Shown here: piece after piece, positions 2,147 to 29,775 of the stretch | Layout of the letters: the number at the start of each line of letters is the position of its first letter | Numbering within the stretch: position 1 is the stretch's first letter | From: Entomortierella parvispora E1425 | Taxonomy: Eukaryota; Fungi; Mortierellomycota | Assembly (NCBI GenBank): GCA_020891255.1 | Contig: BQFW01000008.1 | Span: 3,038,001-3,102,000, forward strand | Direction: 5' to 3' | Length of the DNA stretch: 64,000 nt | Made by a program: the position numbers and the translations under genes | The notes under the pieces: generated by a model | Database searches by the model: none | Told to the model about the DNA's origin: nothing | What the model saw: only the letters and a program-made list of their open reading frames with translations

Positions 2147-3556
2147 TCAGTATCCCCACCGGTGTGGGTAGTCAGTTCTGTTGCCACCATGATGGAGCCC
2201 CATGATACATCCATGGCACCGCGCCTTATCGTGAGGCTTGGTAGTTTCCTCAGAATCAGAGCCATCATTTCGATACTGACGTTCTCGTCGACCCGTCCAC
2301 AATTCGAAGGCCTTGATTGTCGACCTCACATATGAATCGCGATCCAGCTCTGCCTCCATGTATTGCTCGCAGCCTCGACACTTTTGAAAATAAATCAAAG
2401 ACTGGTACTTCAACGTATCTTTGGAGCCTCTGAATCCACTGGCTGGAGTATACTTGCACCAAAATTGAGTAAAAACCTCAGCAGAGTGCCAAGTTCGTGG
2501 CTTACCCCGCATGCGACAGGACGTACAATGAAATCGACCAAACATATCCCGACCCCTCTGCTCAATATCGGAATGCATGGACTCTGACTGTTTGAGTGTG
2601 GAATCATAGATAAGGGTGCAATCCCACAAGGACGATGTCGTCTTATTGGCGGCTGCCTCCACAAGTTCATCATGCAAGTAAGATCCATCCTTGGTCTTCT
2701 GGCTGGCGACTGGTCGTCCATAGTTCCCTGCTTTCCCTGGGTTCTTTTGCTTTTTCCGAGGCTTTTCCGCCTTAGCTACTATAGCCCGGTGAGTAGGAAG
2801 AGCTGAGCTGCTGGTCGAGGGAGAGATGGGCTCGAAATCGTCGTCAGAGGAGAGGACGTAGCCAGAGTTGTCTGAAGAGGGCTCCGCTGTGTCAGCGAAG
2901 GCGGATGCGCGGGCGGCAACTTCAGCTGGTGTTGCTGAGGCCTCAGCGCTTGATGTTTCCATGGCTACTTCGAGAGATTTTAGTACCGACTCCACGGGCG
3001 TGTCCACTTTCTTACGTCTACAACGTTCGTTGTTGATCAGAGAACGCGCCCAAGACGGGGTGGTCTGCATGCTGATCATGTTCAGGTCTGTGCGGTCTAA
3101 CTTTGGCAGCTTATCTCTCAAGTCTTCCAAGGCCTTGGCCGTTGCTTTGGCTGGAAGCTTGAGTTTGTAGGTGGATTTCGCTGCTGTTGCGGCCATAGAT
3201 GCTGCTGTTGTTGTTGGTGGTATTTTTGGCTGAGCTGATGTTGTTGTAGTGGAGGTGGTCGCTGCGGTGGTTATGGTAGGTGAGGCAGCAGCAGTGCTTG
3301 ATGTGTTTGGCTTGCCCAGTCGCTGGTCTTGTATTTTGCGCCGACATCGCTCCTGGTGGATAATGTGGCGAGCCCAAACAGGGGTGGAGCTCATATCCAG
3401 CCTGTTCAACTCTTGACGGTCAACCTTGGTGACTTCCGCAGCGAGCAAGGCGGGGCTCGCGCCGGGAGTAAGCAAAATAGAGAGCGTGGGCACGGACGAT
3501 GCCGCTGAGGCAGCAGCTGTGGTGGCAGGAACTTTGCCATTCTTGTTTTTAGCCAT
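2147..3556 (-). CDS. 3CxxC-type zinc-binding domain protein, tandem paralog
   Basis: 469-aa ORF containing MFGRFHCTSC...WHSAEV...YFQKCRGC...HDKARCHGC and two copies of a ~40-aa LDRxDLN...PxWAR..I..ER motif. Confidence 0.85.
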   Translation of the reverse strand: MAKNKNGKVPATTAAASAASSVPTLSILLTPGASPALLAAEVTKVDRQELNRLDMSSTPVWARHIIHQERCRRKIQDQRLGKPNTSSTAAASPTITTAATTSTTTTSAQPKIPPTTTAASMAATAAKSTYKLKLPAKATAKALEDLRDKLPKLDRTDLNMISMQTTPSWARSLINNERCRRKKVDTPVESVLKSLEVAMETSSAEASATPAEVAARASAFADTAEPSSDNSGYVLSSDDDFEPISPSTSSSALPTHRAIVAKAEKPRKKQKNPGKAGNYGRPVASQKTKDGSYLHDELVEAAANKTTSSLWDCTLIYDSTLKQSESMHSDIEQRGRDMFGRFHCTSCRMRGKPRTWHSAEVFTQFWCKYTPASGFRGSKDTLKYQSLIYFQKCRGCEQYMEAELDRDSYVRSTIKAFELWTGRRERQYRNDGSDSEETTKPHDKARCHGCIMGLHHGGNRTDYPHRWGY

Positions 3557-5693
3557 GATGACCTTGGTCTTGCTGGATGCAATGTTGTAATGGCGGGCCC
3601 GAGATGGTGCTGAGTGAATGAGATGTGATGAAGGAAAAGAGTGCTGATGCAGAGTGCTTTGACCATGGGGTGGGACACACGCGACTCAAAGGCGAAGTAC
3701 ACCAAGTCTAGGGTACAATTAAGGGGCACCACCGGGGATCAGGGACAAAAAAAAAAGCCATCCCCCGCGGCATGCCTTTTTTCTTGGCATGGGCCAATTC
3801 ACTTTCCTCAATCAACCATAGTAACATCAGTCGTCTTCATAATTCGAGCACAAGACTATTCTCCGGCCTAACAAGGATGTCGACGTACGCGCCCAAGGAC
3901 CTGTTCTAGAGGAACACTCTGTTCTGATAATGAAAAGGCAGTCGATTTTACTAACACGTCCCTCTTCACTCTCTGTCTCCCTGTCTGTCCTAGAAGTTCC
4001 CCGGAAAACATGGGACGATGACGGTCATTGAGAGAAGAAAAAAACTGGAGATCCCAGAAGGTATATCAAAGGTTGGAGAGACGACACAACCCCCCCCCCC
4101 ATTTTTTTACAGCATCGGGAGCGACATCTCCTCATCTCATATGAGAGGCTCGGGCAATTTGCGTGATACCATCAGCAATCGATGATGCCGGCGACAACAC
4201 ATAGAAAGTGGCGTTGTAAAGATGCTCGATAACAGCGGTACAATGAAAGAAGGCAGGCTAAATCCTGTGAGTAGAGATCATCAAGAGTGGCAACACGGGT
4301 GACCACTTCGTCGGCATCGCAGGTGGCAGTATCGTTGGCAGCCGCACTGTCAGCAGTGCTTCCGGATGATGATCAGATTGTCGACGATCTTGATGTTGTC
4401 GAAAATGTTGGATCCAAAGAGAGAAGCGATGGCCAGGATGACGGGGAGGACGACGGGGAGGATAGTGCATTTGGATCATCCCGATCCATTGCGCACAAAG
4501 ATGCACGTCATCTATTTAATGACTGGCCATTACTGCCATTTTTCAGACACATATTCGGAAGGTATTGTTATAGAGCTTGGCAATGTTCACTAAGTCTTCT
4601 GTATCGCTAAAACTCCTTTACTTTATAGGTACCCAAGGTTTCTCCGATGGGGCACCACGAATTCCAGCAGATATCCCTTCAGATGCTAGTCTCGTACGCT
4701 CACAGAACTCTCTCTGGAAAAGACGCAGAACTTCATAATCTCAAGGGTGTATAGTAAGTACATGAAAAAAACCCCCTATTGATCGCGCCACAGGTTTGGT
4801 TCACGTCCCATCTGCTGAAAAGTGCCCATCTTCTATTCCAAATGATTTTACTGTATGTAGCGTTGCCCTGTCTTGCATCGTCTCTGCCACTGTGAAAGAT
4901 GCCTACAACATATTCTGTCCCAGCGTGTTGCATGAATTGCGAGGGAAGTGACCCTGAGGGAGCTCACCATGCCGATCTTGAACAAAATTCTGTCACCTCT
5001 TCAGAAGAGCATCATTGGCAACAACTACGACCTCACCTACATGCAGCAAGAGGTGGATCTGCGCACGGCTGCGCTTGTTCTATGCGAGCGCGACGAACGA
5101 TGGTTCACAACGGAAGAGAAGGCGGACCTTGCCGCACCCTGGAAAGTCTACCAGATTCCACAGCTAAAACAAAATAAAAAATAAAACCATTTTATTTCAT
5201 TGACATCTGTGGGTCTGCTGAAGTGACCATGGAAGCCAACGGAATAAGAAGCAGTATATTGAGGACGTGGTTAGTCGTGGGCGGTGATCAGAAGTAATAT
5301 GCATACCCACGGACAGAATCGTCGGCAGGACAAGGGACGATGATATCTGTTTTGTGATTGATGAGATACCCATTACCATTGAACTGGACTGCCAGAGATA
5401 TCTGGGTGCTGTTGATCAAGTGAGTGCCATTGATGACGACAACCGCCCATCCAAGACTGGTCGGGGATAGTATAGCAGCAAGGCTCACAGCTGGTAAGTT
5501 CTGGGGCTTTTGCAATGCCTAATAGTCCAAGATCAACTCTTCTGAACGTTGGCAGCAGTGTCCTGGTGAGGGAAGGAAGCAGAGGGGTTGCAAAGATCAA
5601 AATGTCCATTTTTTCTGTTGTTTGAGTACCTTGAAAACAGACGAGAAAGAACAATAGGGTTCCTACACCTCCTACCTCAGCTCAACAGCACAT

Positions 5694-6008
5694 GACGACT
5701 ACTGGCCTTGTCTCCCTCCCTTTCTTCTATCTAGCGATCATTAAAAAATATAGGCGGGGGAAGCCTCCCGGACGTGCAACTGCCTCAAAAAAAAAAAAAA
5801 AAAAAGGGTTCATCAGCCATTTCCTTTCCACCAAGTCATGACACCGACCGAGGGGTCGATCTTAAATTGGTGACCGTGTAGACACATAGGATGCCTGTTG
5901 TCCTTGATCGCAACGCGTCAAAAGAACGCGTGCCGTTGACCTTTTCTACAGTTGTTTGAAGCACGTTGCACTGGAATCCAGAAAAAAAAAATCTCGGTTT
6001 TGATCAAT
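5694..6008 (+). repeat. Interspersed repeat, copy 1 (includes a GC-rich motif and an A-tract)
   Basis: Aligns by eye with the reverse complement of ~16180-16533 (gacgactac..ctagygatcattaaaaa..gcggggaagcctcccgga..gcctcAn..gatcttaaattggtg..tcaaaagaacgcgtgcc..ggaatccagaaa) and partly with 20160-20280. Confidence 0.8.
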
Positions 6009-6961
6009 CGTGATTCTATGGGTAGCGTTACTCTCCTGAGTCTCCTCCCACCCCACCTCTTCTTCCTCCTGCTCGATTGCCTGGTCCGAATCCTTGATCT
6101 TAGATAGCGAAGTACGACATCTCAAAGCCAAGCCCTCGTCTTGCCCCCTAGCTCGTATAAATCGTCGCCATCCCGGGGCAAAGGAAGACCCACAGAATCT
6201 TTTTCCCGATAAAAGCTCAATCTCACTCTTTTATTGTTTCCCATGTTCCTGTTCTGGATATTTTTCTTCACTTCTGTCCTTTTCTCTTTTCGTTTATTCG
6301 GGCTCGTCTCCCCCAAAGATCCCTCTCGTTGCGCCGCATTGTCTTTTTACAGCCACAAACCCCTCGCACTCCAACATAGGGTGGTGCGCCACGTTTTTTT
6401 GGCATGGAGCGAGCGGATTAAGATTTGAGCAGACAAACCGGGTCCAACGGACAGCAAATCATGAATTTTTAGAGCACAGCGGATGGCAGAGTGATGGCCA
6501 TTGGGCGCGCGGAACCGAAAGATTGCCCGGGTGGACAAAAGGGAGAGCGAATGGGCGGGTCGGGGGGCGTCGGTCTAGTCGGGCGTTGTTTTTATTTCAT
6601 TTGCTTGGGAAATAGGTCCCTTTCATCTGAGACCTTGCAAGTTAGAGCCAGGGGGGGCGGAGAGTGAGTGCAGCGGGACTATTATTGACATAAAGAGAAG
6701 GTCGACGCCCTGTGGGAGCGGGAAAGTGGGTCAAGAAGGGAAAGAATCTTGCTGTAGGATGTGGCGCGTACCGAAAGAAAGAAAGAGGGGAAGGCGAAGA
6801 AGGAGAAAGAAAAGAAGATTCATATCATGGCACAGAACACAAAAATGAATGCAGAGGCAGGGCGAGGGACATGCGCCCTCGTCTGTCCCCCCAACAACGT
6901 GTGGCTCTCATTTCCCAAGACGGTCAAGGTCAGTTCTCGGTATCGAATGAGGGACGACGGC

Positions 6962-10962: not shown

Positions 10963-12900
<1,938 letters not shown>

Positions 12901-13646
12901 ACTTGAGACACCCCTGCGGCTTCTTCACTCTTATCATCCTCCAACCACACGATCTTTGTTCTTTTCTTTCTTCAATACCCTCTCCTAAAGATATTTCACA
13001 TTAGACCAGCAGCCTCTCCCTCATGAAGGGGAGCTACAAAAAATAAACCAGCTCCTTTTTTGCCTTCATCCACGCACAGTCTCGGACAGATTTCTACTGC
13101 TGTTGCTCAAGCCTACGCTCTTCGGACAAAAGTAAAAGTCTGTGTCAGACCGAATGCTACTGCAAACACAGTCGAGCCCCCTCTTCATCCTCAGCACTTT
13201 GAAACTGGCGGTGTGGGGCAACATCGAAGAGGTCACGCTTTCTTTGACGCGTCCCTTTCTCTGACAATTTAAACAAGCCACCGAGGGGCCAAAGCGCGAC
13301 ATGGGCCATCCAACATTAGGCGTCAATGCCACGCAACATTTCTCCATTCACCTCCCTCACCACGTTCTCATCAGTTACTTCCACGCGTTCTTTTTTACAC
13401 CTACCACAAACCCATATCGTCCATCACCTCCATCCTCAAGAATCTCACCATTCTCTTCAGCTCCGCTGTGGCAATCACCGCTTTCATCTCTCTCATTCTT
13501 TCTCTAGTCCCAGTTTCTTTCTCCAGCCGTTCATCCGTTCATATGGTAAGTTTCCAGTTCTATTTCAACCTTGGGAGAGACAAAGTGCCCAGGTGGGACT
13601 TGTCTTGTCGGCATTCCGAGGGCCATTCCTCTTAAGGATCCTGCAC

Positions 13647-13897
13647 AAGTAACTGCGCCCGGGTATCTCCCCTGCAGTAAAGTCCAAAAGTAGCTGCGTC
13701 CGGGACATTTCCCAGGCAGCGAAAGCCACAAGTAACTGCGCCCGGGGCATCTCCCCGGCAGTGAAGGCCACAAGTAGCTGTGTCTGGGGCATTTCCCAGG
13801 CAGCGAAAGCCACAAGTAACTGCGTCCGGGGCATTTCCCCGGCAGTGAATGGCACCCATAACTGCGCCCGGGGCATCTCCCCGGCAGTTAAAGGTAG
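13647..13897. repeat. Six ~42-bp tandem repeats with internal hairpin, plus a seventh copy at ~14098-14140
   Basis: Unit aagtaACTGCGCCCGGGGCATCTCCCCGGCAGTgaaggccac. Unit starts at 13647, 13688, 13730, 13772, 13814, 13856. Confidence 0.9.
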
Positions 13898-14318
13898 AGT
13901 ATCGACATACTGCACGGTGCAACTTCACCTGGTATCGTCAGGCTGCCTTTGGCATTGGTCCAAGCAGTCTCCAACACATTCTTTTTTCTTCAATTTTCAA
14001 ACATCAGCAAGGGCAGAGGTGCGATGTACCATTGTTGTTTTCTTGCAACATTGTACTATCTCTGTGGCCAGTTCCTCTCGTAAGGGTTGGTCTTGCACAA
14101 ATAACTGCGCCCGGGGCATTCCCCCGGCAGTTAAAGGTACAAGTATAACGTGGCGCACTGCACGGTGCACTTCACCTGGTGCGCCACACTGCTCGGCCGC
14201 AAGGTCGAAGCAGCCCCTTTTTGGTACCGCTCTACAATGCTGCACAATTTGCTGGAGAGGATAGATCCATTTTCTCTTAATGTAACAATGTAAATAACCA
14301 TCCATGTTTGATTATTAG

Positions 14319-15786
14319 TTGAAGACGTTCACTCCCACTCCAACTCATCTGCATCCGCCACCGGAATGCAACGTCCTTGTCCCCTTCCCGAAATCAATTG
14401 AGAACAATTCGCGAACTCGATTTTTCTTCATTAATACGCCTCAGCGATGGCTGCCAGAAATATATCTTAGGTCCGGGGAGGCGAGTCTGGAACCGTTCAT
14501 GGAGATGATGAAATCCCTGAGTGAATGTCGACATGTAGCCGATAACCGGATTCGTAGGTTCTGCTTTCAACTTTTGAAATTCTATACGGAAGACTCGGCT
14601 GGGAAACGGCGCAGGAAACTGCTGGAATCGGAACAAGCTACTCGACTGGAAAAAAATATATTCCATGTGGAGGCTGACGGCAATCTTTACCGTCAAGCAA
14701 CTGAAGGAAGTCAAGAAACCGGAGGCCAAGTAACAGAAAGTATGGCTTTTTACATCATTTATATCATAACATGTGCAAGTGTTTTAATTATGGCTCTTTA
14801 CATAGGTGGTGACAAGCGAAAGAGAGTTATCAGCGATGAACACGAATCGGAAAATCAGGGGAATTCTGAAGGCAAGTATTCGCCCACAGGATGATTTTCT
14901 ACACTTTTATTATATAAATACTGACATGGGTACATCTTCATGTTGCAGTAGCAATAGCGCCCTATCAGCGCGATCTTTCAACATCTTGTCTCTTCCCCCA
15001 AGACTCTCCCTCGAGCCCAGATCACTCAGCTGTGCTTGAGGAGCCGCTTACAAATGACCAAGATGATCCATTCCACGATGATGATTTAGCTGCGCAAAGA
15101 TGTAAGTGAATGTTGCAACAGCGATATCAGCTCATTGTTATCTCGGAATTAATTATTTTTGTGTATTCTTTGCATAGCGGCAGCCATGGCATCCTTGAAT
15201 CAAAAAGTAGAGTGGAAGGTTGGAAACCATGATTTCCTGTCCAAATTTCTCGACTTCAAGGCGCAAGCCAGTTCGCGATATTCATTAGCTCTAGATGGAG
15301 TTGCTGATCTTTCACCAGGTTCTGAGTTCACCCTGACTCTGCCTCTGGAGGAGCGTCCATTGGCCTGTGCGGTGTCCACATCAGAACCAGACATCAACGA
15401 AAAGTGGCCAACACTGCTTCCAATTCTTTCCAGAGTTTGTGCGCCTACCCACTCTTACGATGACGTGGTCAATGCCTTGAAGAACGAAGACGCCAATGAC
15501 CCCATTGTCGAATATCTCCGATGGATTACGTACAATTAGTAAGTACCATTTTTTTTCTCTTTTTTGTTTGTTAGAAGGATTTCTAACCTGCCTAGTATAA
15601 TTCATAAATAGCTCTCATCATCTAAAGTTCTCCAACGAGGTCTGTCAAAGCTTGAATGAGCGGGAGGGGTTTGGCGATTTTACCTGGCCTTTCATTCGAG
15701 GCGCATTGACAATGGTCGGTATCCGCTCACGACAATTCGAGATCTTGGTTGGGACGAAGAAAAGAATCTCGGTAGGCCCTTTGTCA

Positions 15787-15820
<34 letters not shown>

Positions 15821-16272
15821 ACTTCAAAAAAAAAACATTCGTTCAGACATACCACTCCCGCCCCATCCCATGATCTTCCTACAAGACTCACACATGCCTC
15901 CCTCTTTTTTTTTTTTTTTTTTTTTTTGTATTGGATGCAGGTCGCGACGTCGGCTCTATTGTACTTCAGTCAGTTCTTTCAATTTGTATCTGCTCAAGGC
16001 GGCTTGTCAGTCACTCTCCCCCAAGACGAACCCCTTTGATCACGGCTCCCCTCCACCGTGCTTTCAGGATTTGTTTCAATGACCAAGGTCTCCATCGCAA
16101 GACTATAACGATACCCACAGTTGACGGCGATTATAGCCAGAAATACATAAAGCGGAGAAACTTCTGCAAACAAACAGCAATTGATCAACATCGAGATTTT
16201 TTTGTTTCTGGATTCCTGGTGCAACGTGCGTCAAACAACTGCAGAAAAGGTCAATGGCACGCGTTCTTTTGA
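14319..16272 (+). pseudogene. Degenerate multi-exon hypothetical gene, possibly element-borne
   Basis: Protein-like ORF blocks at 14319-14894, 15159-15538 and 15612-15771. The intron 15539-15611 joins ...YLRWITYNY|SHHLKFSNEVCQSLNEREGFGDFTWPFIRGAL. The other junctions need stops or frameshifts. The 3' part is repeated elsewhere in the window. Confidence 0.45.
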
Positions 16273-16533
16273 CGTGCTACGATCAGAGACTACAGCCGTC
16301 TCATGGGTCCACACGGCACCAATTTAAGATCGGCCTCTTGGTTGGTTTCATGACGCGCGCGTGGCCAGCATGTTTCTGATGGGCCTTTTTCGTTTTGTTT
16401 TTTTGTTGTTGTTTTTTTTTGTTTTTTTGTTTTTTGAGGCAATTGCACATCCGGGAGGCTTCCCCGCTAACAGTTTTTAATGATCACTAGAGGAGAAGAA
16501 GAAGGGGAAGGAGACATGGCGAGTAGTCGTCAT
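16010..16533 (-). repeat. Interspersed repeat, copy 2 (inverted relative to copies 1 and 3)
   Basis: Reverse complement matches 5694-6008 and 20160-20420. Confidence 0.8.
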
Positions 16534-18344
16534 GGGCCATAGGAAGGACTGTTCTTTCTTGTCTGTTTGCAAGAGTCGACTGGATGGGCGGCGTTGGCGA
16601 CTGCTTCCTGTAGTTTGACGAGAATCTTGTCTGTGGATTGGCAATTCTTGGAGAGAGAGAGAGAGAGATTATGAGATGGTCTTGGGCGCGTAGAGGCGGC
16701 CATGAGTGTTTGGATATATCCGCTGGAAATTTTTGGTTTCCTCATCGGAACATCTTTCCGTAAAGAATAGTTCTGGGTCAGAGGGGAGGATCTCTGGGAA
16801 GATCCACGAGCCATCCTGGAGGGAAAAAGTCAGGGCATTGTTCAGGAAGCCAGAAGTATGGATCATTTTCCCAGAAGGAGATCGGTTCAGGGGCGGAAGC
16901 CGTGACCGTAGGGGAAGGAGGGGGGGTGTGCTCAGCAGATGGGGCTGGGGCTGCAGCTGCAACAACCTGGAGAAGTTGCATGAGAGGTGCATCTGTGGTG
17001 TTATCACTAGGCAGTGTAGACATAGGAAAAAGTGAGCTCAAGAGGTTGCGAAATGGTGAGCCTGGCGAACGAAAAGAACTTTCATTGAGGTCTTTCACAT
17101 GAAGTTGGTCCCAGCCCATGTAAGAAAATGGCCTTCATGCCCCGCACTCGTGGGTCTCCAAGAGTGGTCTTTCATATAAATTGGTTCTAGCCCATGTAAA
17201 AAAATGGCTTTCACGCCCTGCACTCGTGGGTCCCCAAATTCTAGCCCATGTAAAAAATGGCGGGAAACAACGATGTCTTCGCCCATCTGTATCAGTTCTC
17301 CATGTGCATCCCTCCATTTGATCTCATTCATTTAATCATTCATTCAATCATTCAACCGATCACTAGGACATGGTAGGGAAATCGCCTCCACGGTGTTGTT
17401 CTTCCTTGCCGTTGTTTTTCAACTTGCATCAATTTGTCGTTATCCCTGTCCTTAGATGCTAGGAAGCGAGCAAGGAAGACAGAAAACGCCTGTAAAGAGT
17501 TGTTTGCTGACCCTTCTGTCTATCTTCATGTTTTTGTTCCTGTTCAATTGCACCCTGTGAGAACAGACTCGCGCTGACTGATGTAGGGGCACGCCCAAAC
17601 AACATCGGACGACTCTTCCAATATCGACGCTCGTTGAGCCAGGATGACCAATGGCATCAGCGTCATCTTCGATTAGCACGCCAAACACACTCTCACCACT
17701 CTGGATGGTCGCCCAGTCGCTTTTGCTCACGGAAAAGGCACTCATCTTCACGATGTCGGACACAGTGAATACCTCCATGGGCAAGGGACCACTATTGACA
17801 CGGATTAGCAGGAGTAAAACAGGCAAGAACGCGATGGACATCCAAACACCTCAATTCAAATCCAATTCAGACGTTGAGCTGCACTCTCCCTTGAGGTGAT
17901 CACCGCACGATAACTGGGGAATGCCCTCATGGGCAGGGAGTAGCACCCTGCGTCTTGCCCCACTTCATCTACCAGGGCTTTGGATCAAGCTCACTGTCGA
18001 GACAAGGAAATCATTGGCAATAAGGAGGAATGTGTCATTGGCTTGATCCGAGATTGCAGTTGTACGCTTACGCCCTGTGGAGCTCTTTCAGCTGTGCAGC
18101 TGACTTGGACAATACATGTCCAGACAGTCCAGACAGGCCAATGTCTGAGCCTTGGACTGTAGTTCCATGCTAACTCTACCACGTCTCCCACGCTCAGCCT
18201 TGTAAGATCGTGGATCCATTCGGTCTCTAGGAAAGTATTCCCGTGGTTTCGATCGTCACCAGTCTCTTGATGTTGTCGATTGTTCGCTTGATGCTCCCTG
18301 TGCCCCATTATGTCCCAGAGTCCCTTAATTTTCAACTTTTCCAT
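16530..18344 (-). pseudogene. Fragmented hypothetical ORFs convergent with the 14.3-16.3 kb pseudogene; local ~47-bp repeats at 17114-17261
   Basis: Several overlapping short minus-strand ORFs in different frames, with no recognisable domain. The motif cccatgtaaaaaaatggc..gcactcgtgggtc is repeated locally. Confidence 0.3.
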
Positions 18345-18934
18345 TGAATTTTTTTTCCTTCACTTCTTCACCCCCTGATCTCTCTTCTCTTTCCACCTCC
18401 CTAGATTTTTTTACGTCTCTTGGAGCGTTTGCGTCAGGGGTTCTTCCTGCACCATCACCATTACTGTTGTTGAAATGTACTCTGACATCTCTTGACAATT
18501 GTGCCTTTGAACTCTGCTGTGAACCCTCACCTTTCTTGCCCTAACTCCTTGACTGCTTGATCTCTCGCACTTCGCTGTTGATCTCATTCCAGCCCCTGTC
18601 CCTTGTTTTCTCGCTACCCATTTTTTCATGCACCTCGCTGACAACACCAGTCATTACTGTGGTTTTTTGCAGTTATTCTATCTCGTTCTTGTAGTTGAGT
18701 ACGTCCTTTTTTCATCTGTAGTATACTCTTGAGGAACATCCGACTATATTTTCTCTCTCCTTTTCCAAAGGAGACCTGTCTTTCATATATAAAAGAAGGT
18801 TCCAACTTGACCAGCATCCTGCACCAAAACACATCCGATCCTACTCCAGCCAAAAACCGTGAAGGAGAAACAAGACCGTTTTCAAAGTTCCCCCTCCTTG
18901 TCAATAACCAACCCTATCCCATCGAACCACCCAA

Positions 18935-19198
18935 ATGCTCCGATACCTGTCGATCTTTGCCTCCTTCTTGGGTTTTGCCGCCGCCCTCAACTGCCAATGC
19001 CATTTCGCCGATTACAAGAGTAACAATGCCATTGACTTCGCAAGCACTGCAAGAGCTTGTAGAGATGTTAAAGGCTCGTACCTCGCACAAACTGGAGGTT
19101 GCGACCTTGGACAGAGTCCACGTATGGTTATCTGTAGAACGTTTGAGAACACATGCGTCACGCTTGGTGCAAAATCGCGCTGCTCTGCCTATTGTTAG
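18935..19198 (+). CDS. Small secreted cysteine-rich protein (87 aa, 8 Cys)
   Basis: Signal peptide MLRYLSIFASFLGFAAA, 8 Cys in the mature part, TATATAAAAG about 150 nt upstream. Confidence 0.8.
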   Translation: MLRYLSIFASFLGFAAALNCQCHFADYKSNNAIDFASTARACRDVKGSYLAQTGGCDLGQSPRMVICRTFENTCVTLGAKSRCSAYC

Positions 19199-20159
19199 TG
19201 CTTGGGGCACTGCCACCAGTCTCTGTGCAAAGTAGGAGGCTGTTATAGACTGAATAAACATCCCTCCTCCTGAAAGTTGGAACATGTTTATGAGGTACAA
19301 ACGAAAGAACCTGGAAGGCAAAAGAGAAAGACGTTGCTTGTCTGTAACGAAACAACATCTGCGCAACCAAGGACCTTGGAGGGATTCTCGGCTTCCTGGG
19401 GTCAGGGTTCATATGAGAGCACGACAGTTCTGGTCGTGGTGTGCTTTTAGAATCGTTGGGATAGCCATTGCCCAAGGAGGTGCTCGACTCTGTCTTCCTC
19501 GACACGAATGCACGAATCTGACTAGCGTCGTGCGAGATGACCGCCGAAATGCACACCCCATCATCCAAACACTCTAACCTTCCCTTCTGATACCAAGCAT
19601 CCTTCAAAGTCAAAAACATGCCTGACCCTGTCGCAACCAAGAGCGTCCTCCGCAGCACCGACAACACCATTTTTCTTCTAAAGCTCCTCCAAGTTGTCTC
19701 TCTCGCCTTGACCTCCACGGCGCTTCTCCCACTTTTCTACCCTCTTGGGTCTCGCGGCGGCCATCTCCAGAGGTGGGGGAATCCTTGTAACCATAGACAT
19801 GAGTGGCCGCGAGTAGAGGAAGACGGCTTCACAACCCAAATTCCAGAATATACTACTTCCCAAGAAGGTAATAAACATGGTGCCAGCTCCGAGCGATGTA
19901 CAGACGGAGAAGGCTATCTTCAGCTGTCAGCCTGATGATGGCTGGTCAACACTGACAAACTCTAGGGTGATCTCGGATGGAGAGGGTGGGTGACACGTAC
20001 CCAAATGTCCATTCGCCTTTGTAGAGACCCTTGAATCATAAGAGAATGACAGCGGTCTCGGACCTGAACAGGACCAAGAGCCAACAACTCCTGACGTCAG
20101 AGATGACATTTTTTTTTTACAAACAGCTTCATATCGTGCAATAGAGGGGGTCACTTTTT

Positions 20160-20420
20160 ATGACACCCTGTGGACACATAGGATGGATGCTGTCCTTGAT
20201 CATGGCGCGACAAAAGAACACGCGCCTTTGACTTACTCTGCAGTTGTTCGACAGGCCCCCTCGACTTTGATTAATTGCAAAAGTCTCTCTGCGTGATGTA
20301 TTACTGGCAGTATCATCGTCTGACTATGGACATATTCCTTCGATGGAAACCTTGGTTATTATTGAAACAAATCCTTGACCCGCCGTGGGAGCTGTGATCG
20401 AAGGATTTCGTCTTGGGGAG
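20160..20420 (+). repeat. Interspersed repeat, copy 3
   Basis: gtggacacatagg..gtccttgatc..caaaagaacacgcg..ctgcagttgttcga and cgatggaaaccttggtt..attgaaacaaatcc..tcgtcttgggga match copies 1 and 2. Confidence 0.7.
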
Positions 20421-20559
20421 GTTGCTGACTACAATCGAAAAAACTCGATTCAATGAGGATGACGTCGCCACTTGCATTCAATAGGATAGAACAGAAAACA
20501 TACAGTCCAGATATCTAAATACTGATTCGGCGGTAGCCCAGGCCCAAGAGCGTCCCAGT

Positions 20560-23500
20560 TTAAACGCTGAACCGGGAGAATGGAAACGCAAGAAAGGAGT
20601 AAGGTTATCATGTTGGTATGTTGGTTACAATCTCGAATCTGTCGTGTCGTGGTTGCTGTGACAAATTGATGGGTTGACCTACATCCTGTGGAGTACAGCA
20701 GGAACATCAAAGAGATACCAATCACCACGTTAGATACATTCCTACCACTGTCACGTCTTCGTGGATACGAACAATAGGTTGTCTCGACTTACCCGCTGAT
20801 TGAGCAGAACAGACACATCAGGGAAGAGATAACAACGTCCGCGTTAGCTACATTCTGTCATTTGCCATGTGTTCTCGGTACGAACAATAATTCAGCTTGA
20901 CCTACGATCTGAATAAGCAGAACAGAAACATCAGGGGAAGAGATACCAACAATCGCGTTAGCTAAAATCTTGCATTTGTCATGTTTTCGTCAGTAGGAAC
21001 AATAGGTCGGCTCGACTTACTATCTGATTGAGCAGAACAGAAACATCGGGGAAGAAATACCAATGATCGTGTTAGCTACAGTCTTGTATTTGTCGTGTCT
21101 TCGTCTGTACAAAACGATAGGTGGGCTCGACTTACTTGCTGATTGAGCGGAGCAGAAACATCGGGGGAAAAAATACCAACAATCGCGTTAGCTACAATCT
21201 TGCATTTGTCATGTCATCGTCGGTACGAACAATAGGTCGGCTCGACTTACCCGCTGATTGAGCAGAACAGAAACATCAGGGGAAGAGATACCAACAATCG
21301 CGTGAGCTACAATCTTGCATTTGTCATGTTTTCGTCGGTACGAACAATAGGTCGGCTCGACTTACCCGCTGATTGAGCAGAACAGAAACATCGGGGGAAG
21401 AAATACCGATGATCGCGTTAGGTACATTCTTGCATTAGTCATGTTTTCGTCGGTACGAACAATAGGTTGGCTTGACTTACATGCTGATTGAGCAGAACAG
21501 AAACATCGGGGAAAGAAATACCAGTGATCGCGTTAGCTATATCCTTTCATTTGTCATGTCTTCGTCGGTACGAACAATAAGTCGGCTCGACTTACCCGCT
21601 GGTTGAGCAGAACAGAAACATAGGGGGAAGAGATACCAATGATCGCGTTAGCTATACTCTTGCATTTATCGTGTCTTCGTCGGTACGAACAATAGGTCGG
21701 CTCGACTTACTTGCTGGTTGAGCAGAACAGATACATCGGGGAAGAGATACCAACGATCGCGTTAGCTATATCCTTGCATTTGTCATGTCTTCGTCGGTAC
21801 GATCAATAATTTGGATCGACTTACAGGCTGATTGAGCAGAATAGAAACATCGGGGAAGAGATACCCACGATCGCGTTAGCTATATCCTTGCATTTATCAT
21901 GTCTTCGTCGGTACGAACAATAGGTGGGCTCGACTTACGTGCTGATTGAGCAGAATAGAAACATCGGGGGAAGAGATACCAATAATCGCGTTAGCTGTAT
22001 CCTTGCATTTGTCATGTCATCGTCGGTACGAACAATAGGTCGGCTCGACTTACGTGCTGATTGTGCAGAACAGGAACATCGGGGGAAGAGATACCAACAA
22101 TCGCGTTAGCTGTATCCTTGCATTTGTCGTGTCTTCGTCGGAACGAACAATAGGTCGGCTCGACTTACATGCTGATTGAGCAGAACGGAACATCGGGGAA
22201 GAGATACCAATGATCGCGTTAGCTAAAATCTTGCATTTGTCATGTCATCGTCGGTACGAACAATAGGTCGGCTCGACTTACTCTCTGATTGAGTAGAACA
22301 GAAACATCGGGGAAAGAAATACCAATGATCGCGTTAGATACAATCTTGCATTTGTCATGTCTTCGTCGGTACGAACAATAGGTCGGCTCGACTTACATGC
22401 TGATTGAGCAGAACAGAAACATCAGGGGAAGAGATACCAATAATCACGTTAGCTACAATCTTGCATTTGTCGTGTCTTCGTCGGTACGAACAATAGGTCG
22501 GCTCGACTTACGTGCTGATTGTACAGAACAGGAACATCGGGGGAAGAGATACCAACAATCGCGTTAGCAACATTCTTGCATTTGTCGTGTCTTCGTCGGT
22601 ACGAACAATAGGTCGGCTCGACTTACGTGCTGATTGTGCAGAACAGGAACATCGGGGGAAGAGATACCAACAATCGCGTTAGCAACATTCTTGCATTTGT
22701 CGTGTCTTCGTCGGAACGAACAATAGGTTGGCTCGACTTACCCGCTGATTGAGCAGAACGGAACATCGGGGGAAGAGATACCAACAATCGCGTTAGCAAC
22801 ATTCTTGCATTTGTCGTGTCTTCGTCGGTACGAACAATAGGTTGGCTCGATTTACCCGCTGATTGAGCAGAACGGAAACATCGGGGAAAGAAATACCAAT
22901 GATCGCGTTAGCTACAATCTTGCATTTGTCACGTTTTCGTCGGTACAAACAATAGGTCGGCTCGACTTACTTGCTGATGGAGCAGAATAGAAACATCGGG
23001 GGGCGAGATACCAATAATCGCGTCAGCCACATTCTTGCATTTATCATGTTTTCGTCGGTACGAACAAAAGGTCGGCTCGACTTACAGGCTGATTGAGCAG
23101 AACAGAAACATCAGGGGAAGAGATACCAATAATCGCGTTAGCTGTATCCTTGCATTTGTCATGTTTTCGTCGGTACGAACAATAGGTCGGCTCGACATAC
23201 ACGCTGGTTGAGCAGAACAGAAACATTGGGGAAGAGATACCAATAATCGCGTTAGCTACAATCTTGCATTCGTCGTGTCTTCGTCGGTACGAACGATAGG
23301 TCGGCTCGACTTACACGCTGGTTGAGCAGAACAGAAACATTGAGGAAGAGATACCAATGATCGTGTTAGCTACAATCTTGCATTCGTCGTGTCTTCGTCG
23401 GTACGAACAATAGGTTGGCTCGACTTACGTGCTGATTGTGCAGAACAGGAACATCGGGGGAAGAGATACCAACAATCGCGTTAGCAACATTCTTGCATTT

Positions 23501-23986
23501 GTCGTGTCTTCGTCGGTACGAACAATAGGTTGGCTCGACTTACCCGCTGATTGAGCAGAACGGAACATCGGGGAAGAGATACCAATTATCGCGTTAGCTA
23601 CAATCTTGCATTTTTTTTTTTTTTTCGTCAGTACCAAAAATAGGTCGGCTCGACTTACCCGCTGATTGAGCAGAACAGAAACATCGGGGAAGAGATACCA
23701 GTGGCTATGTTAATTGCAACCTTGCGATTGTCATGTCCTAGTCGTCATGAGTAATTGGCATGTTTGACTTACGGCCTGATGGAATGGAACAAGGATTAGA
23801 ATGCGGGCGGAGACACTTAACCGCGTTAACTTCGGTTTTTGAATGTGCAGCATCATGAATGTGAAAGCTGCTGTCCGTAATGAGGCGTCTTCAGTCTATT
23901 ACTTCATCACTCTATTCAACTTACACTGGGGCAGCAATAGTAACACCTAGAAAGGCAACAAGGACAGGTAGAATTTGGATCTTCAT
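20560..23986 (-). CDS. Micro-exon gene for a small secreted peptide: 62-nt signal-peptide exon, 28 three-nucleotide exons and a terminal exon
   Basis: Exon 1 (23986-23925) encodes MKIQILPVLVAFLGVTIAAP+GT, followed by GTAAGT. There are then 28 instances of CAG|NNN|GT spaced 110-116 nt apart. The terminal exon starts at 20566 (C GTT TAA). The fully spliced product is MKIQILPVLVAFLGVTIAAPVPGGTVVLNGGTTIDITTLNGIGGK*. No transcript evidence is available. Confidence 0.8.
20567..23775 (-). repeat. Tandem array of ~28 units of ~115 bp (each an ~112-nt intron plus a 3-nt exon), degenerate at both ends
   Basis: Minus-strand consensus GTAAGTcgagccgacctattgttcgtaccgacgaagacatgacaaatgcaagattgtaGCTAACgcgattgttggtatctcttccccgatgtttctgttctgctcaatCAG+NNN. 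Most unit spacings are 113-116 bp. Confidence 0.97.
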
Positions 23987-24091
23987 TGTAAGGCGATTGG
24001 AACTGGAAGTTGTAGGGTGTAGTTTGAACAAGGTTGGGATGGAGGGAAAGGTTTGAATCAAGTGATGGTTGCGGCCCAAAGAAACCGATGG

Positions 24092-24306
24092 TATGTTAGG
24101 AGACAAGAAAAAGAAAAGCATCAAGGGGTTCGTCAGGGGTTTTCAAGGGATGCTTGAAGGGGCATCACCCTCCTTTAGTTCCCGTTCTTTTTGGGAAGAG
24201 GCACTATGTTAGGAGACAAGAAAAAGAAAAGCATCAAGGGGTTTTCAAGAGATGCTTGAAGGGGCATCACCCTCCTTTAGTTCCCGCTCTTCTTGCGAAG
24301 AGGCAC
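24092..24306. repeat. Tandem direct duplication (113 bp + 102 bp) upstream of the micro-exon gene
   Basis: tatgttaggagacaagaaaaagaaaagcatcaagggg...gaagaggcac occurs at 24092 and 24205. The copies differ by an 11-bp indel and a few substitutions. Confidence 0.9.
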
Positions 24307-24633
24307 TCAATGTCGGATCCCTGTCGTACGGTTGCACTCAATTGCTACTCTCAGATCTCTGCAGCAAGACGATCCCTGCAGCAAATCCCAGTGTCCCTCC
24401 TTCTTTTCCAAAAAAAAAGGGAACTTCCTCTCGCTCATCTTTACCGAACCAAGATGTCAGAATGCATGAAACAAAATTCTTTTGATTTATTTCATGTTCC
24501 CCATCATCATCAGACGAGACGAACACGCTGGAATATGGTACAAGAAAAGTGGGTACAAAAAGACGCGGGAGGGTGAGTTTTGGTTGGGTATCAACAATCA
24601 TATACAAAAAAGGAAAAAAGAAAAAAGAAGGCA

Positions 24634-27600
24634 TCAAAGGCTCGCCTCCATTTCTTCATGCCGAAGGATGTCCGCAACAATCGCAACTCCATTGCCGAGG
24701 ACATATCGCACAAACTTGGAGCCCGTGATAGCGCCGGCGGCATAGATGGACTGATCCAGACGAGGGTACAAGGATGGCGTGCAAGAAGGTGCCACCAGGG
24801 AATGGAGTCGCCGATGGTGATGAGGGTGGAGCTCCTCCTCCACCTCTACTGCCTTTAACTGCTCCCGCTCGTGTTCCGCTTCAACGGTTGTCGTCGCTGA
24901 CTCGGACCCGTCCAACGCTAAAGTGCACACAGATGAGGTGCAAGAGGATACAGACGTTGATCGATTGGACCTCACAGAAGCCGATCGCGTCAATGAGCCT
25001 GTGGAGGAAGCTGAAGTCGACAACAACTCTCCTGAGCCTTCTCCCTCCCCTTCCTCATCCTGCTCGATTGCCCCGTCCGCATCCTTGATCTTTGATACCG
25101 ATGTACGACAAGTCTTTGTCAGAGACTGCAAACAATTCGTCAACGCATTCGCGGCCGCCGCAGAGCAAAGGGTTAGCAATGGCGGCGTAGCCAGGGTCGG
25201 ACACACTGTTCGGGAGGACCTCAAGAGAGGTGAGCATGGCATGGACAAACACGCGGATTTGGAAATGGCTTTGGTCGCTGTGACCTCGTTACTGGGTTCT
25301 CGTGGGGCAGAATCACGAGGATCGTTTACGTCCCGGAGACGTGGCTCGTCATTCTCGGAGGCGCCTTCACTGACAAGAGTAGATCCTGGGGAGTCACTGT
25401 CAGTAGACTTCGAGGCCGTTGTAGTGACCGCTGAGGCGGTCGCGCAATCAGAGTTCCGAACTGGGTAGCAAGGTAGACGCGGGCACTTCTTGGCCTTGGT
25501 AGGGTACGCGACTGCTGAGCCCAGTGAAATCGAAGCGGGTGAGGCACTCGCTACTGCATCAACCAACGGACCAGATTCAGAAGACGCAGTCGAAGAGGGG
25601 ATGATCCGGAAGTTGTACATGTCCGAGACTAAAGGCCGTAAAAGTGTCAGCACTTGATACTCCTCAACCTTTTCTTCTTCGGATTCTTCCGAGGACTCTT
25701 CGCTCTCCTCCTCCTCCTCCTCCTCCTCCTCCTCCTCCTCCTCCTCCTCTTCTTCCTGTTTTTCTTCCTCCGCCACGTCCTTGTGTTCTTCTTGATCTGT
25801 ACAGCCAGCCTCAGTTAGATCCAATCCTGCTTCTGCATCTTGCTTCTGCTGCAAAGAAGGAAGAGCATGTGCCTCCGGGTCCATCATCTTGTTTTCAAGA
25901 GCTCCTTGAAGCAATTGACAAGGTCGAGACCAGAGCGACTGTTTCCTGGGTCTCAGAAGTGGTGACCTCGGTGGTGTACAAGGTGGTGTGAGCATGTCCA
26001 CTGCCAACTCTCGACTCGAGTCTGCGCTTCCTCGTCGAGGTCGTCTTCCTCGCCGACTGCCTCCTGATCGACTCAATCTCCTTCTCAGATCGGCTTTGAT
26101 ATCAAAAGGGTTCGTCGCGACGGCTTGAGGGAGTGGAGGAGATAGGTATCCCGTTGCAGGCGATGACGAAGAAGACCCTGGAAATTCACCATCCTCTAGC
26201 GGAGACGAAAGCATTTCTTCTGCCAACGATCCCTTCAGAAATCCCATGTGGACCTCCTTGCCAATAAACACGCCTACAGCCGCCACCTTTTCCTTGATCA
26301 CCACGCCGTGGCTCAGCAGGATCACAACCTCGCCTGAGATAGGGTCCCAGCTTGAGATGGATGCGTCAGGTAGACCTCTGTATGAACAGGCCGAGCAGAG
26401 AGCTAAAGGTCCGTTCTCCAACATCTCGCCATCTCCTGTCTCGCCCTGCTGCTCATGCTGTTCATGCTGCAAAAGCTTGCACTGCTCACACTGGGTCGTC
26501 ATGTTGGATACATCTCCAAAGATCTGGCAACATGGTGGCTTTTGTGGTTGCTGGCCCTCCTGTCCCTTTGTAGTCGACCCTGACTCCACAGCCTTTGGTT
26601 TTTGATACATCTGTACAGAGTTTTTGAGCGTGGCACACTTCCGCATTCGAAGCCAGACCGATGCATATCCCGGATACACATCGCGATGGCATCGCTTCAG
26701 TGGAGATGGTTCTGATGCCGTAAAATGCCTGTAGATGTGGATCACTCGTCGCCAGGGTTGCTTCTCCTGGATCAAAAGGATAGCATCCGCAGCTGAAAGC
26801 CCTGTACCCACAATCACAATCGGGAGAGGAGGTGGCAATGACGATGGCGGTGGTGTCTGATTCTGCAATCGCGCCATCGATACATTCTGTGATGACAACT
26901 GCAAATCTGCATCCTCCTTGTGGACAGCGGGAGTGGAACCCATTGGAGGCGGAGGCGAAGGTGGAGGTGACACCGCATTACTTCCTGCCGAGGTCGTCGC
27001 TATTGTTGTCCGGTTATCGTTGGGTCCGTGCCGCTTCATCCATTCTTCCAACTGTCGGGTATCATGAAATGTCTGCTTGATCATCAGCGCTGAAGGGTCG
27101 GTGGAAGGTAACGGCAGGCACGGATGAAGACTCACAGCCTGTAGTTTCTTGGGCTGGTCAAAGGTCCCTGTGGCCAACACAACTGTCTTGCATCGCACTA
27201 AAAATTTGCTTATCCGCTTGGCTGTTGTCGTGGACATCATAACCGCCACTGAAGTTGGAGAAGGTGGTGTGTCAATATGTCCCAGGACTGCGTATCGAAA
27301 AGGACTGCATTCCTTGCAAGGCCCCAATCCCAGTCTCATCCTCTGTTGAACTTTCTCTTCCATCCGGTGTCTCTGTTTGGAATCCAGCTTGGGATCGAGA
27401 GAACAGCAGCAGTGTCCTGGTAGATCCTTGAGATGATATACACTCGTGACAGTTGTAAATTCCGAAAAGTTGGACTGGATCTCCATCCGCTGGACATACG
27501 CCTTGTAATAAGCCGAGACTGCCGATCGCAAGGGTCGTTCCAGTTCCTGCTGATCCGAATATTCGGCATGCTCACTTAAAAACTCAGCGAAAGGGTATAA

Positions 27601-29775
27601 TGGTAGCTCCATGTGCTCGTTGTAACTATTGTTGGATACAGAGATAGAGTGGAGATGGGAACAACGCACAGTCAGCATACATGGAATAAATGGAAATAGT
27701 AAATTATGATCGGCGCCGACAAAAACAAATCTGTACCTGAGTGTCTGGTTATGATCTTGTTCCATGTCAGCCCAGATGCCACCGACAGCACCGCGACCAA
27801 GGACTAAATGCGGCCGTGCTGTTGATGTTGTCGGCGAAACATTGGGATGCAGAGTAGCATGCCCAAAAGTGGATGTCGGGGGTGGACTTTGGGAATCGGA
27901 GGCTGACGCGTCGATCGACTGCTTGGCCAAACCAAGGCCGGTGGGCGGGTGCTTCCAGTACAAAAATGAAGGGAATTCACCACGATTGGTATCAAGATGT
28001 GGGTGCGCCAATGAATCAAACATGGCACTAATCGGGTTTGCGTCCCTGCCAGCCTCGGCTAACTGATGCTGGATATGGTTGGTCAACTGAGCAAAGTCCT
28101 ATTTGAGTGAAATGGATATGAGCACAAAAATTCAGATGGCGACCCAAGGAGTGACGGGCATGTGGGTCGACAGGGGATGTCAAACGAGATGGGACACTGG
28201 ATCTCCTTTCTTGGCCACAAGATGCAACATGCATTGACAGAGAAGAAAGGCAATTGCTCTCGGTGCTCGACTATTGATATCATATGGTGTCATCTCTGGG
28301 TTGTCCCACCAACAAACAACTCCATCTCTGATCTATGGATCGAGTAGATATGGAGAACATCGGATCTCCAACATACTCAAAGACGCCATTTGTCGATCTC
28401 GATCTGAAATGCCGCGCGTCTCCACGTCAGCGGTTGGTCGTATGCATATCCAGAGAGCGCAACCACGAAAAAAAAAAAAAAAAAAAAAAAACACTTGCAA
28501 AATCTAGCGGTCGATGACCCGTGCACAATGCAAGATGATGGGCAAGAGGATCAGGGGTGTTGTGTTATCGTCGACAACCCAGGGGGTCTGTTTTTTCATT
28601 GCCTTTCCACGAGAACGAGAGCACAGGGGGAGAGAGAGAGAGAGAAAGATGGAAATGGGCCGTGGTGTTTTTTGTTTTGTCCTTGCAACGGAAAAAGAGC
28701 CAGGGGGTGGATGCTCATGCAACGATTGTCCTACACCCCTCCACCCTCGTTCTCCACTCGCACTGCTTTCAACAAAAATTGCAAGTCTGTCTTCTCCGGA
28801 GAGCAAGTCCGAGGTCTCCAGACTCACCCACCCCATTTTTTTGTTTAGCATTGGTGTAGTTGTTGTCGTCGTTTGTTGCATCACCACCCAATGACGGAAA
28901 AGCTGACAGATGTCAACACTGCCCAACCTTTTTCTTTCACCCACAATGGTTTGCCGCCGAAACATCAGAGTACAAAGCCCAGTCAGATCCCTGTCAACAC
29001 AAACCAACACAGGATTGGCATGTGTAACTTTGATTGGGTGAGTTGGCACCGAGCACGCGGGGAGAGAACTTGTAACATGCGCCAGGTTGGAAATCAAAAA
29101 AGAAAAGAAAATCCCAGACGTGTTTTGCATCGTGGCGACTTTGGCAGCGCATTGGCTTTCCTCAGAGTGCTCTCGCAACCACCTTGGCGGGAGGAGATGG
29201 ATGCAATGCCTTTCTATTTTGCCCGATGGACGCCGCGATTTCTTCATTTCGGGGTGTCAGAGCAGAGATCTTTACCTGTTTCAGCATTGACTTTGGTCGA
29301 CAACCTTCCAGCGCAGTGGGTGCAAGCATGCTGTGGAGGATCGGGTCAGGATGTGGCCTCGATGGCTCTGCATGATAATAGGGCTCATATCCATTCAGCA
29401 GCAACGAGATCAAAATGCCGGCTGGTCCATTTCCTGATGATGATATGATTCAACGGCAAGAAAAGTGAAGAGACGATAAGGAGATTGAGATGCAAAATGG
29501 AGAAGAGGCGCGGGTATCAGATACGGAATCGGACCTCGGATTAAGATCAGCTGTGGTCTCAAAGCGAAAGAAACGTTACCGACAACGACAATATCTGTTT
29601 GCGGGGGGAGGGAGCAGGTCGAGCGGGGATGCTTTGATCGGGCATGGGCACGAGCATGGACATTGGAGGCTACAAGGGAGGGGGCATTCGATGGCATTGT
29701 AGATGGAATCGAGAGAGAGGAGTCCTGATCCGGCATCAGCCTCCTGGGGGAGCTGGCCTCGGCCATTGAGCACAT
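24634..29775 (-). CDS. OSGIN1/2-like (oxidative stress-induced growth inhibitor) FAD-dependent oxidoreductase with large low-complexity insertions
   Basis: Spliced Rossmann motif DIVVVG|NGPAGILISLLLNGYEPYY (intron 29579-29434), then HPDPILH, NPISAMFDSLAHP, GGIWADM, TLS|YNEHMELP (in-frame 111-nt intron 27736-27626), VVLATG, IVIVGTGLSAADA, and C-terminal IYAAGAITGSKFVRYVLG. Exon structure between 29276 and 28098 is uncertain. Confidence 0.82.

Follow-up and report, generated by a model that had tools for sequence, protein, structure and literature searches.

Anatomy of the Array Locus

The locus described here lies in a 64,000-nt window of the genome of Entomortierella parvispora E1425 (contig BQFW01000008.1, positions 3,038,001-3,102,000); the window is the whole stretch of DNA that was analyzed, and all coordinates below are positions within it. 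On its minus strand a tandem array of closely similar units can be arranged as a putative gene with the layout of a micro-exon gene (MEG), in which a run of 28 exons of 3 nt lies between exon 1 and a terminal exon. The array sites were located by matching the regular expression [CT]AG-NNN-GT to the minus strand of 20300-24300, which returns exactly 28 CAG-NNN-GT sites with a spacing of 110-115 bp. Tandem Repeats Finder assigns the array a period of 115 with 26.1 copies and 88% matches, together with a higher-order period of 458 bp. The gene had been proposed in an earlier inspection of the window, termed the sequence-only reading, and all 28 triplets and coordinates given there are recovered by the regular expression.

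In the direction of the gene, exon 1 (23925-23986, 62 nt) begins with an ATG at 23986 and encodes MKIQILPVLVAFLGVTIAAP followed by 2 nt (GT). Intron 1 (23776-23924, 149 nt) has a GTAAGT donor, a TTAAC branch-like site and a CAG acceptor and is a diverged relative of the repeat unit. The array itself (20683-23775) alternates the 28 exons of 3 nt with 27 introns of 107-112 nt. Numbered from the 5' end and placed by their lowest plus-strand coordinate, microexons 1-7 are GCC (23773), CGG (23659), CGG (23544), CAC (23429), CGT (23315), CGT (23201) and CCT (23086), and microexons 8-14 are CAA (22971), CGG (22856), CGG (22742), CAC (22627), CAC (22512), CAT (22397) and AGA (22282). These are followed by microexons 15-21, CAT (22169), CAC (22054), CAC (21939), CCT (21825), CAA (21711), CGG (21596) and CAT (21481), and by microexons 22-28, CGG (21366), CGG (21251), CAA (21136), ATA (21021), ATC (20906), CGG (20793) and GAT (20683). 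The predicted stop codon TAA is split over 20908-21022 with TA placed in microexon 25 (21022-21021) and A in microexon 26 (20908). The last intron (20567-20682, 116 nt) runs from GTAGGT to CAG and is diverged from the repeat unit, and the terminal exon (20300-20566) is defined at its start only, 20566, by an acceptor after a pyrimidine tract and CAG, with no polyadenylation site assigned.

Traces of the way in which the array was assembled are visible within it. Units 2-4 and 9-11 form near-identical blocks with 1-4 mismatches and the same triplets, and since adjacent blocks have been duplicated together, growth by unequal exchange of multi-unit blocks is indicated rather than separate insertions. 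This joint duplication bears on an origin in which a mobile introner-like element was repeatedly inserted beside itself with the 3 nt left as remnants of the target site. Near-identical introns are generally known from introner families and would suit such an origin, but no copy of the unit is found outside the array in the 64-kb window (nor is a further copy of exon 1), a stable fold, such as has been reported for introner-like elements, is absent from the units, and target-site remnants would not be hypervariable as the triplets described below are. An introner origin is judged very improbable.

Conventional products of a repeat were also considered. No open reading frame (ORF) longer than 92 amino acids crosses the locus and none longer than 70 amino acids lies within the array units on either strand; the 92-amino acid ORF (20450-20728, minus strand) runs across the last intron into the terminal exon. 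A conventional coding repeat is ruled out, with a 115-bp unit that is not a multiple of 3 and no long ORF. Protein searches with a sense ORF of 59 amino acids running through the array give no match, and those with an antisense ORF of 61 amino acids give two chance matches to unrelated repeat proteins and no related arrays. The search of Rfam returns no family, the sole match scoring 20 bits (E = 0.71) on the opposite strand, and the intron units fold no better than shuffled sequences (z scores from -0.66 to +1.96), which together rule out a cluster of small nucleolar RNAs, microRNAs or other structured RNAs. In the absence of a long ORF, an Rfam family or a stable fold, no coding or structured-RNA reading competes with the spliced one.

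Splice Signals and Their Conservation

Each unit of the array has the elements of a spliceosomal intron. The donor following the microexon is GTAAGT in 24 of 28 cases, and the remaining four (GTATGT, GTAAAT and GTAGGT twice) retain GT; GTAAGT also follows exon 1. The branch site is CTAAC in 24 of the 27 units, with CTGAC, CTCAC and TTAAC as variants, so that all of the donor and branch variants listed in the sequence-only reading are present. The tail from branch site to acceptor is free of AG in 26 of 27 units and contains 62-71% pyrimidine, and the terminal CAG is invariant. The units satisfy the fungal U2-type consensus of a GTRNGT donor, a CTRAY branch site, a pyrimidine-rich AG-free tract and a YAG end. 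Introns of an aminotransferase gene in the same window, placed from exon boundaries given by tblastx, are roughly 80-210 nt long and include GTAAGT donors and a CTAAC branch site; with comparable length and signals, the array units resemble the normal introns of this genome.

Splice signals no better conserved than the rest of the unit would have counted against the sequence-only reading, and the reverse is found. In a neighbor-joining tree for which only the intron columns of 25 core units were used, the 14 signal columns (donor, branch and acceptor) require 0.36 changes on average compared with 1.37 for the other 98 (Mann-Whitney p = 0.0026), and 11 of 14 splice-signal columns are invariant compared with 34 of 98 other intron columns (Fisher p = 0.0023). 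Constraint is stronger on the splice signals than on the remainder of the intron. Such constraint in sequence points to splicing as something that matters here and says nothing on translation, and in this respect it is also compatible with a transcript that is spliced for another purpose than the predicted peptide, a reading taken up with the reading frame below.

The conservation of the signals stands against a rival account of the locus, in which an intron with 3 flanking nt was tandemly duplicated into an inert satellite that is unexpressed or not chain-spliced and owes its variable bases to a local mutational hotspot, such as CpG decay or slippage at the unit junctions. The tandem arrangement, the higher-order period and the 88% identity are those of such DNA, but an ordinary satellite is expected to spread its variation evenly over the unit, and the array departs from this with hot triplet columns and cold signal columns. 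Also against an inert satellite, the 5' edge of the array coincides exactly with a start codon, a perfect donor and an exon that is signal-peptide-like.

Hypervariability of the Triplet Positions

The greatest variability in the unit is found in the exons. Column entropy reaches 1.63 bits at position 2 of the triplet and 1.99 bits at position 3, no other column of the unit exceeding 1.39 bits, while the CAG and GTA that flank the triplet show no variation. The description of the triplets as the most variable positions in the sequence-only reading thus holds for positions 2 and 3 by this measure. On the neighbor-joining tree positions 1, 2 and 3 have changed 3, 12 and 14 times (3, 9 and 13 times if each triplet is paired with the upstream intron instead), compared with a mean of 1.23 and a maximum of 7 changes for the 115 intron columns. 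Three rate classes are apparent in the unit: slow splice signals (approximately 4-fold slower), an intermediate intron body and two bases that change approximately 10-fold faster than the intron mean. Among pairs of introns that are less than 5% diverged, triplet positions 2-3 differ in 44-67% of pairs and position 1 never does. This decoupling of triplet from intron could equally be produced by fast change of the triplets or by homogenization of the introns with selection keeping the triplets distinct, and under either account the pattern in the sequence suggests that selection acts on positions 2-3.

Part of the variability has a mutational explanation. The context is that of CpG both for the G/A seen at position 2 and for the C/T seen at position 3, which precedes the G of GT, and relatively high variability (1.1-1.2 bits) is likewise found at CpG columns outside the triplet, as expected if the locus were an inert satellite with decaying CpG sites. 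The bases at position 3 are nearly even in number (7/7/6/5), and since all four occur almost equally, CpG decay and transitions are insufficient to explain this position.

Reading Frame and Predicted Peptide

Exon 1 contains an ATG in one of its three frames only, and that frame ends 2 nt into a codon directly before a perfect GTAAGT, confirming the 62-nt exon with a phase 2 ending. Its product MKIQILPVLVAFLGVTIAAP has Lys at position 2, a hydrophobic core of 13 residues and a small-residue T-I-A motif, a layout of n-, h- and c-regions that by inspection is signal-peptide-like; the signal peptide of the sequence-only reading is retained in this qualified form. With the last codon of exon 1 left one nucleotide short, codon positions 1-2 are supplied by bases 2-3 of every microexon, whose first base completes the previous codon as its third position. 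Chained translation in the only ATG-initiated frame gives MKIQILPVLVAFLGVTIAAP-VPGGTVVLNGGTTIDITTLNGIGGK-stop and reproduces the earlier spliced translation, including the stop TA|A across microexons 25 and 26, with the last junction approximately 10 nt beyond the stop.

C occupies the first triplet position in 23 of the 28 microexons, and nearly all codons of the phase 2 frame consequently end in C. In the ORFs of the window GGC, ACC, GTC, AAC and ATC each rank first among the codons for their residue, and CTC ranks second for Leu. The argument that position 1 is kept as a wobble C stands as to the count of 23 and is ambiguous as to its cause, since C or A also suits position -3 of the 5' splice-site consensus.

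A second chain is open at the level of sequence. In phase 0 the triplets encode an Arg/His-rich peptide that continues across all 28 triplets and 38 codons of the terminal exon, and this chain is one form of a broader alternative, that the locus is transcribed and spliced with a useful product other than the predicted peptide, the other forms being a host transcript valued for its introns or its splicing and a young peptide without function. The phase 0 frame of exon 1 has no ATG, for which reason this peptide was set aside; the alternative donor that would yield phase 0, GTGTAA, is weak, and phase 0 would need CGG, an uncommon Arg codon here, nine times. Openness of the 38 codons in the terminal exon is probably due to chance (approximately 0.16 for 38 open codons). 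A purely intron-centered function is poorly matched by units that lack both an Rfam match and a fold better than that of shuffled sequence, and it leaves unexplained the hypervariability of precisely those two bases that determine the residue. Alongside the openness of phase 0 and the silence of the signal constraint on translation, this alternative is favored by the unrelated triplet strings of homologous arrays described in the next section; overall it is regarded as rather unlikely.

Related and Control Arrays in Metagenome Contigs

Metagenome contigs were scanned with a pattern that is independent of intron sequence (GTAAGT, 85-115 nt, CAG NNN GTAAGT, 85-115 nt, CAG NNN GTAAGT). More than 120 contigs match and fall into two classes. 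Most are ordinary satellites with an invariant triplet (TAA, ATG or CCA repeated), and these were used as negative controls; their triplet entropy is at or near 0 and not above that of the rest of the unit. Because ordinary satellites with CAG-NNN-GTAAGT keep their triplets invariant, the pattern of the window array is far from chance. A minority of matches have near-identical introns together with variable triplets.

Two of the latter, L038 (8-1324, plus strand) and L097 (94-780, minus strand), both from metagenome Ga0302182, have units homologous to those of the window with 68% identity over 197 nt. Compared with the window consensus, GTAAGT, the CTAAC region and the pyrimidine tract with CAG are kept and the middle of the intron has diverged. 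The 5' end of intron 1 in the window, GTAAGTTGAA, matches the start of the intron units in both arrays. L038 and L097 share 76% identity over the 3' part of the array and approximately 600 nt of flanking sequence and have different triplet strings; they represent paralogues within a single organism or else genes from sister taxa. The triplet strings of L038, L097 and the window are mutually unrelated except for a shared final CAA.

Other arrays repeat the architecture with introns of different sequence. The whole of contig L005 (minus strand) is composed of an unrelated 129-bp unit with the same low-high-high variability over the three triplet positions, and further variable arrays of 3-nt exons whose introns are unrelated to those of the window occur in L045 (241-1583, plus strand), L056 (minus strand) and L036 (5311-6419, minus strand), the intron units of these four contigs ranging from 105 to 184 nt. 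The array in L036 comes after conventional exons coding a coiled-coil-like sequence. Recurrence of the low-high-high pattern with unrelated introns in L005, and its absence from the control satellites, counts against the inert satellite, which on the evidence taken together is considered unlikely.

A distinct group (L052, L032, L027, L114 and L073, from samples Ga0193742/3) combines introns of 53 nt with exons of 3 nt. In L052 (Ga0193742_1000959, 2781-6120, plus strand) a P-loop GTPase-like gene, for which the nearest Atlas clusters are basidiomycete, has its exons followed by a run of more than 50 tandem units of 56 bp. When spliced at the best donors, the conventional exons reach the first microexon in phase 0, and in this frame the triplets are stop-free and rich in Lys, Glu, Leu, Asp, Phe and Trp. 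Depletion of stop codons over the basidiomycete-like arrays is only marginal, with 1 observed and 4.6 expected (p = 0.05). From its sequence L052 is a probable second, larger array with one codon per exon, in a basidiomycete. Taken together the contigs show recurrence of the architecture with unrelated introns, probably in two fungal phyla. The metagenome arrays are not proof that the window gene is expressed.

Genomic Context

Directly upstream of exon 1 a putative promoter and 5'-untranslated region (24092-24307, minus strand) is formed by a tandem duplication of approximately 102-113 bp and then a pyrimidine-rich tract toward the gene. The two copies, D1 and D2, adjoin the start of the array gene and are 94-100% identical. 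On the gene strand each has a pyrimidine tract and CCTAAC at its end, and one continues with ATAG, resembling the 3' end of an intron; the duplication could be an intron of the 5'-untranslated region or a duplicated promoter element.

Beyond this lies an ORF of 1150 amino acids (24634-28086, minus strand) that is OSGIN2-like, with all matches in Mortierellaceae and the best in Gryganskiella cystojenkinii (55% identity). In Gryganskiella cystojenkinii an aminotransferase gene is placed 260 bp after the OSGIN2-like gene, and the homologue of this aminotransferase in the window is found by tblastx at approximately 10.9-12.9 kb. Because these neighbors are only 260 bp apart in Gryganskiella, the syntenic site there lacks approximately 11.7 kb of the window (12.9-24.6 kb), the array gene included, and no array or tandem repeat occurs at the Gryganskiella cystojenkinii locus beside the OSGIN2-like gene. 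A position within a lineage-specific insertion that has no recognizable genes nearby is one that an inert satellite would share. The ORFs of the 12.9-20.5-kb flank, like neighboring ORFs, give nothing informative on the locus when scanned against Pfam, and the remainder of the inserted stretch has no recognizable domains.

Besides the array gene, the region 12900-24630 contains short tandem repeats, homopolymer runs and ORFs without a Pfam match. A 42-bp tandem repeat at 13644-13893 has 6 copies with 80% matches and a GC-rich palindrome-like core, CCGGGGCATCTCCCCGG. In a separate part of the window (56687-60523, plus strand) an ORF of 1278 amino acids includes approximately ten tandem repeats of 126 bp (42 amino acids) at 58728-60084, for example GHTGGITSVAYSPNG, whose period and sequence suggest WD40 repeats like the highly similar ones of fungal NLR-type proteins.

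Discussion

The most likely reading of the sequence, which we consider reasonably probable, is that the array belongs to a lineage-specific gene for a small secreted peptide with one residue per exon, built by duplication of an intron together with a codon and spliced by sequential, intron-defined removal. The gene would consist of a conventional signal-peptide exon, 28 exons of 3 nt each with a canonical U2-type intron of approximately 112 nt, and a terminal exon, all on the minus strand. Growth by duplication of units follows from introns that are tandem copies of one unit, and unequal crossing-over or block duplication of "intron plus 3 nt" units would have enlarged the gene, recent multi-unit blocks being still visible. 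After transcription, each intron would be recognized alone by intron definition and removed one after another; stepwise removal is expected since simultaneous occupancy of a donor by U1 and of the acceptor 3 nt upstream of it by its machinery is not possible. The joined exons would encode a precursor of 45 residues, MKIQILPVLVAFLGVTIAAP-VPGGTVVLNGGTTIDITTLNGIGGK, from which signal-peptide cleavage would release a secreted peptide of about 26 residues having almost no charge and a high content of Gly, Thr, Val, Ile and Asn, with microexons 26-28 and the terminal exon forming the 3'-untranslated region. Transcription, the order of splicing, cleavage of the signal peptide, its secretion and any function that the peptide may have are inferred. 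The gene model of the sequence-only reading has passed every sequence-level test that was run and, as a whole, is partly supported.

Several observations weigh against such a gene. Searches for RNA runs with the locus and with 9.9 kb of neighboring genes listed none. The branch A is placed 44-49 nt from the acceptor in the array, which is rather long compared with approximately 27 nt in the one predicted window intron that has a clear branch site. The CpG context accounts for some of the triplet variability, and the preference for C or A at triplet position 1, being shared with position -3 of the 5' splice site, cannot independently fix the frame. Since the triplet strings of L038 and L097 are unconserved, there is no sign of purifying selection on one particular peptide. 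The location of the array in a stretch of approximately 11.7 kb that is missing at the syntenic position in the closest relative available also fits repeat-rich junk DNA, and 28 consecutive exons of 3 nt have no experimental precedent.

The nearest known system is the MEGs of Schistosoma. These have a signal-peptide first exon followed by a run of short exons in multiples of 3, of which skipping keeps the frame, and a small secreted product that diversifies rapidly; the exons are approximately 6-36 nt long and the introns are heterogeneous. Symmetric short exons and rapid diversification are common to both; the first exon of the window gene is by inspection signal-peptide-like, its product is predicted to be small and secreted, and here too the skipping of any microexon would keep the frame. 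In contrast, every internal exon of the window gene is 3 nt, its introns are tandem copies of one 112-nt unit and its host is a fungus of the Mortierellaceae. The likeness is architectural and one of analogy, not homology; no sequence homology is expected, and the predicted window product is a low-complexity sequence of about 25 residues. The combinatorial peptide library by exon skipping put forward in the sequence-only reading is possible but speculative.

Two further systems share single features with the array. Recursive splice sites, or ratchet points, occur in long introns of Drosophila and vertebrates, where a CAG adjoins GTAAGT and the intron is removed stepwise across a 0-nt exon. Ratchet points and the array are alike in an acceptor beside a strong donor that requires successive removal of intron segments, but ratchet points add nothing to the mRNA, whereas the array would retain and translate 3 nt per step. 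Introner-like elements of Dothideomycetes and the introners of algae are near-identical introns dispersed over unrelated genes, the fungal ones being reported as stably folded. Many near-identical spliceosomal introns in one genome are a feature of both, and the window copies differ in being strictly tandem in one gene, unstructured and not found elsewhere in the 64-kb window.

Full-text literature searches found no description of arrays of 3-nt exons. Single exons of this size are documented in Coprinopsis cinerea, where long-read annotation identifies 27 exons of 3 nt in 26 genes as well as exons of 1 and 2 nt, so that fungal spliceosomes can process exons of 1-3 nt (PMC12230235). Like those of the window, the 3-nt exons of Coprinopsis cinerea are internal with canonical flanking introns in a fungus; the difference is that there is essentially one such exon per ordinary gene, whereas in the window 28 in a row would make up the whole mature product (PMC12230235).

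The window gene is probably, as judged from its sequence, a new and extreme variant of MEG organization, and confirmation by complementary DNA (cDNA) would be very surprising to specialists. If true, it would represent the extreme limit of split genes, a satellite and a gene at once, with a separate exon for every amino acid of the mature product, and would imply that intron-defined splicing can chain dozens of 3-nt exons. Analogous arrays on unrelated metagenome contigs suggest that the phenomenon is not a one-off. The broader proposition, that fungi of at least two phyla (Mortierellomycota and, probably, Basidiomycota as represented by L052) carry unrecognized satellite-like genes of "one intron plus one codon" units with one residue per exon, is rated at about even chances. 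Such a class of secreted-peptide genes and protein segments would be invisible to standard gene finders and to the short-read aligners used for RNA sequencing, and the finding supplies a simple search pattern by which more arrays may be located. In genes of this kind length would shift by duplication of units, residues would change by substitution of two bases and isoforms might arise by in-frame skipping, which together would provide a concrete mechanism for the residue-by-residue evolution of a peptide via unequal exchange.

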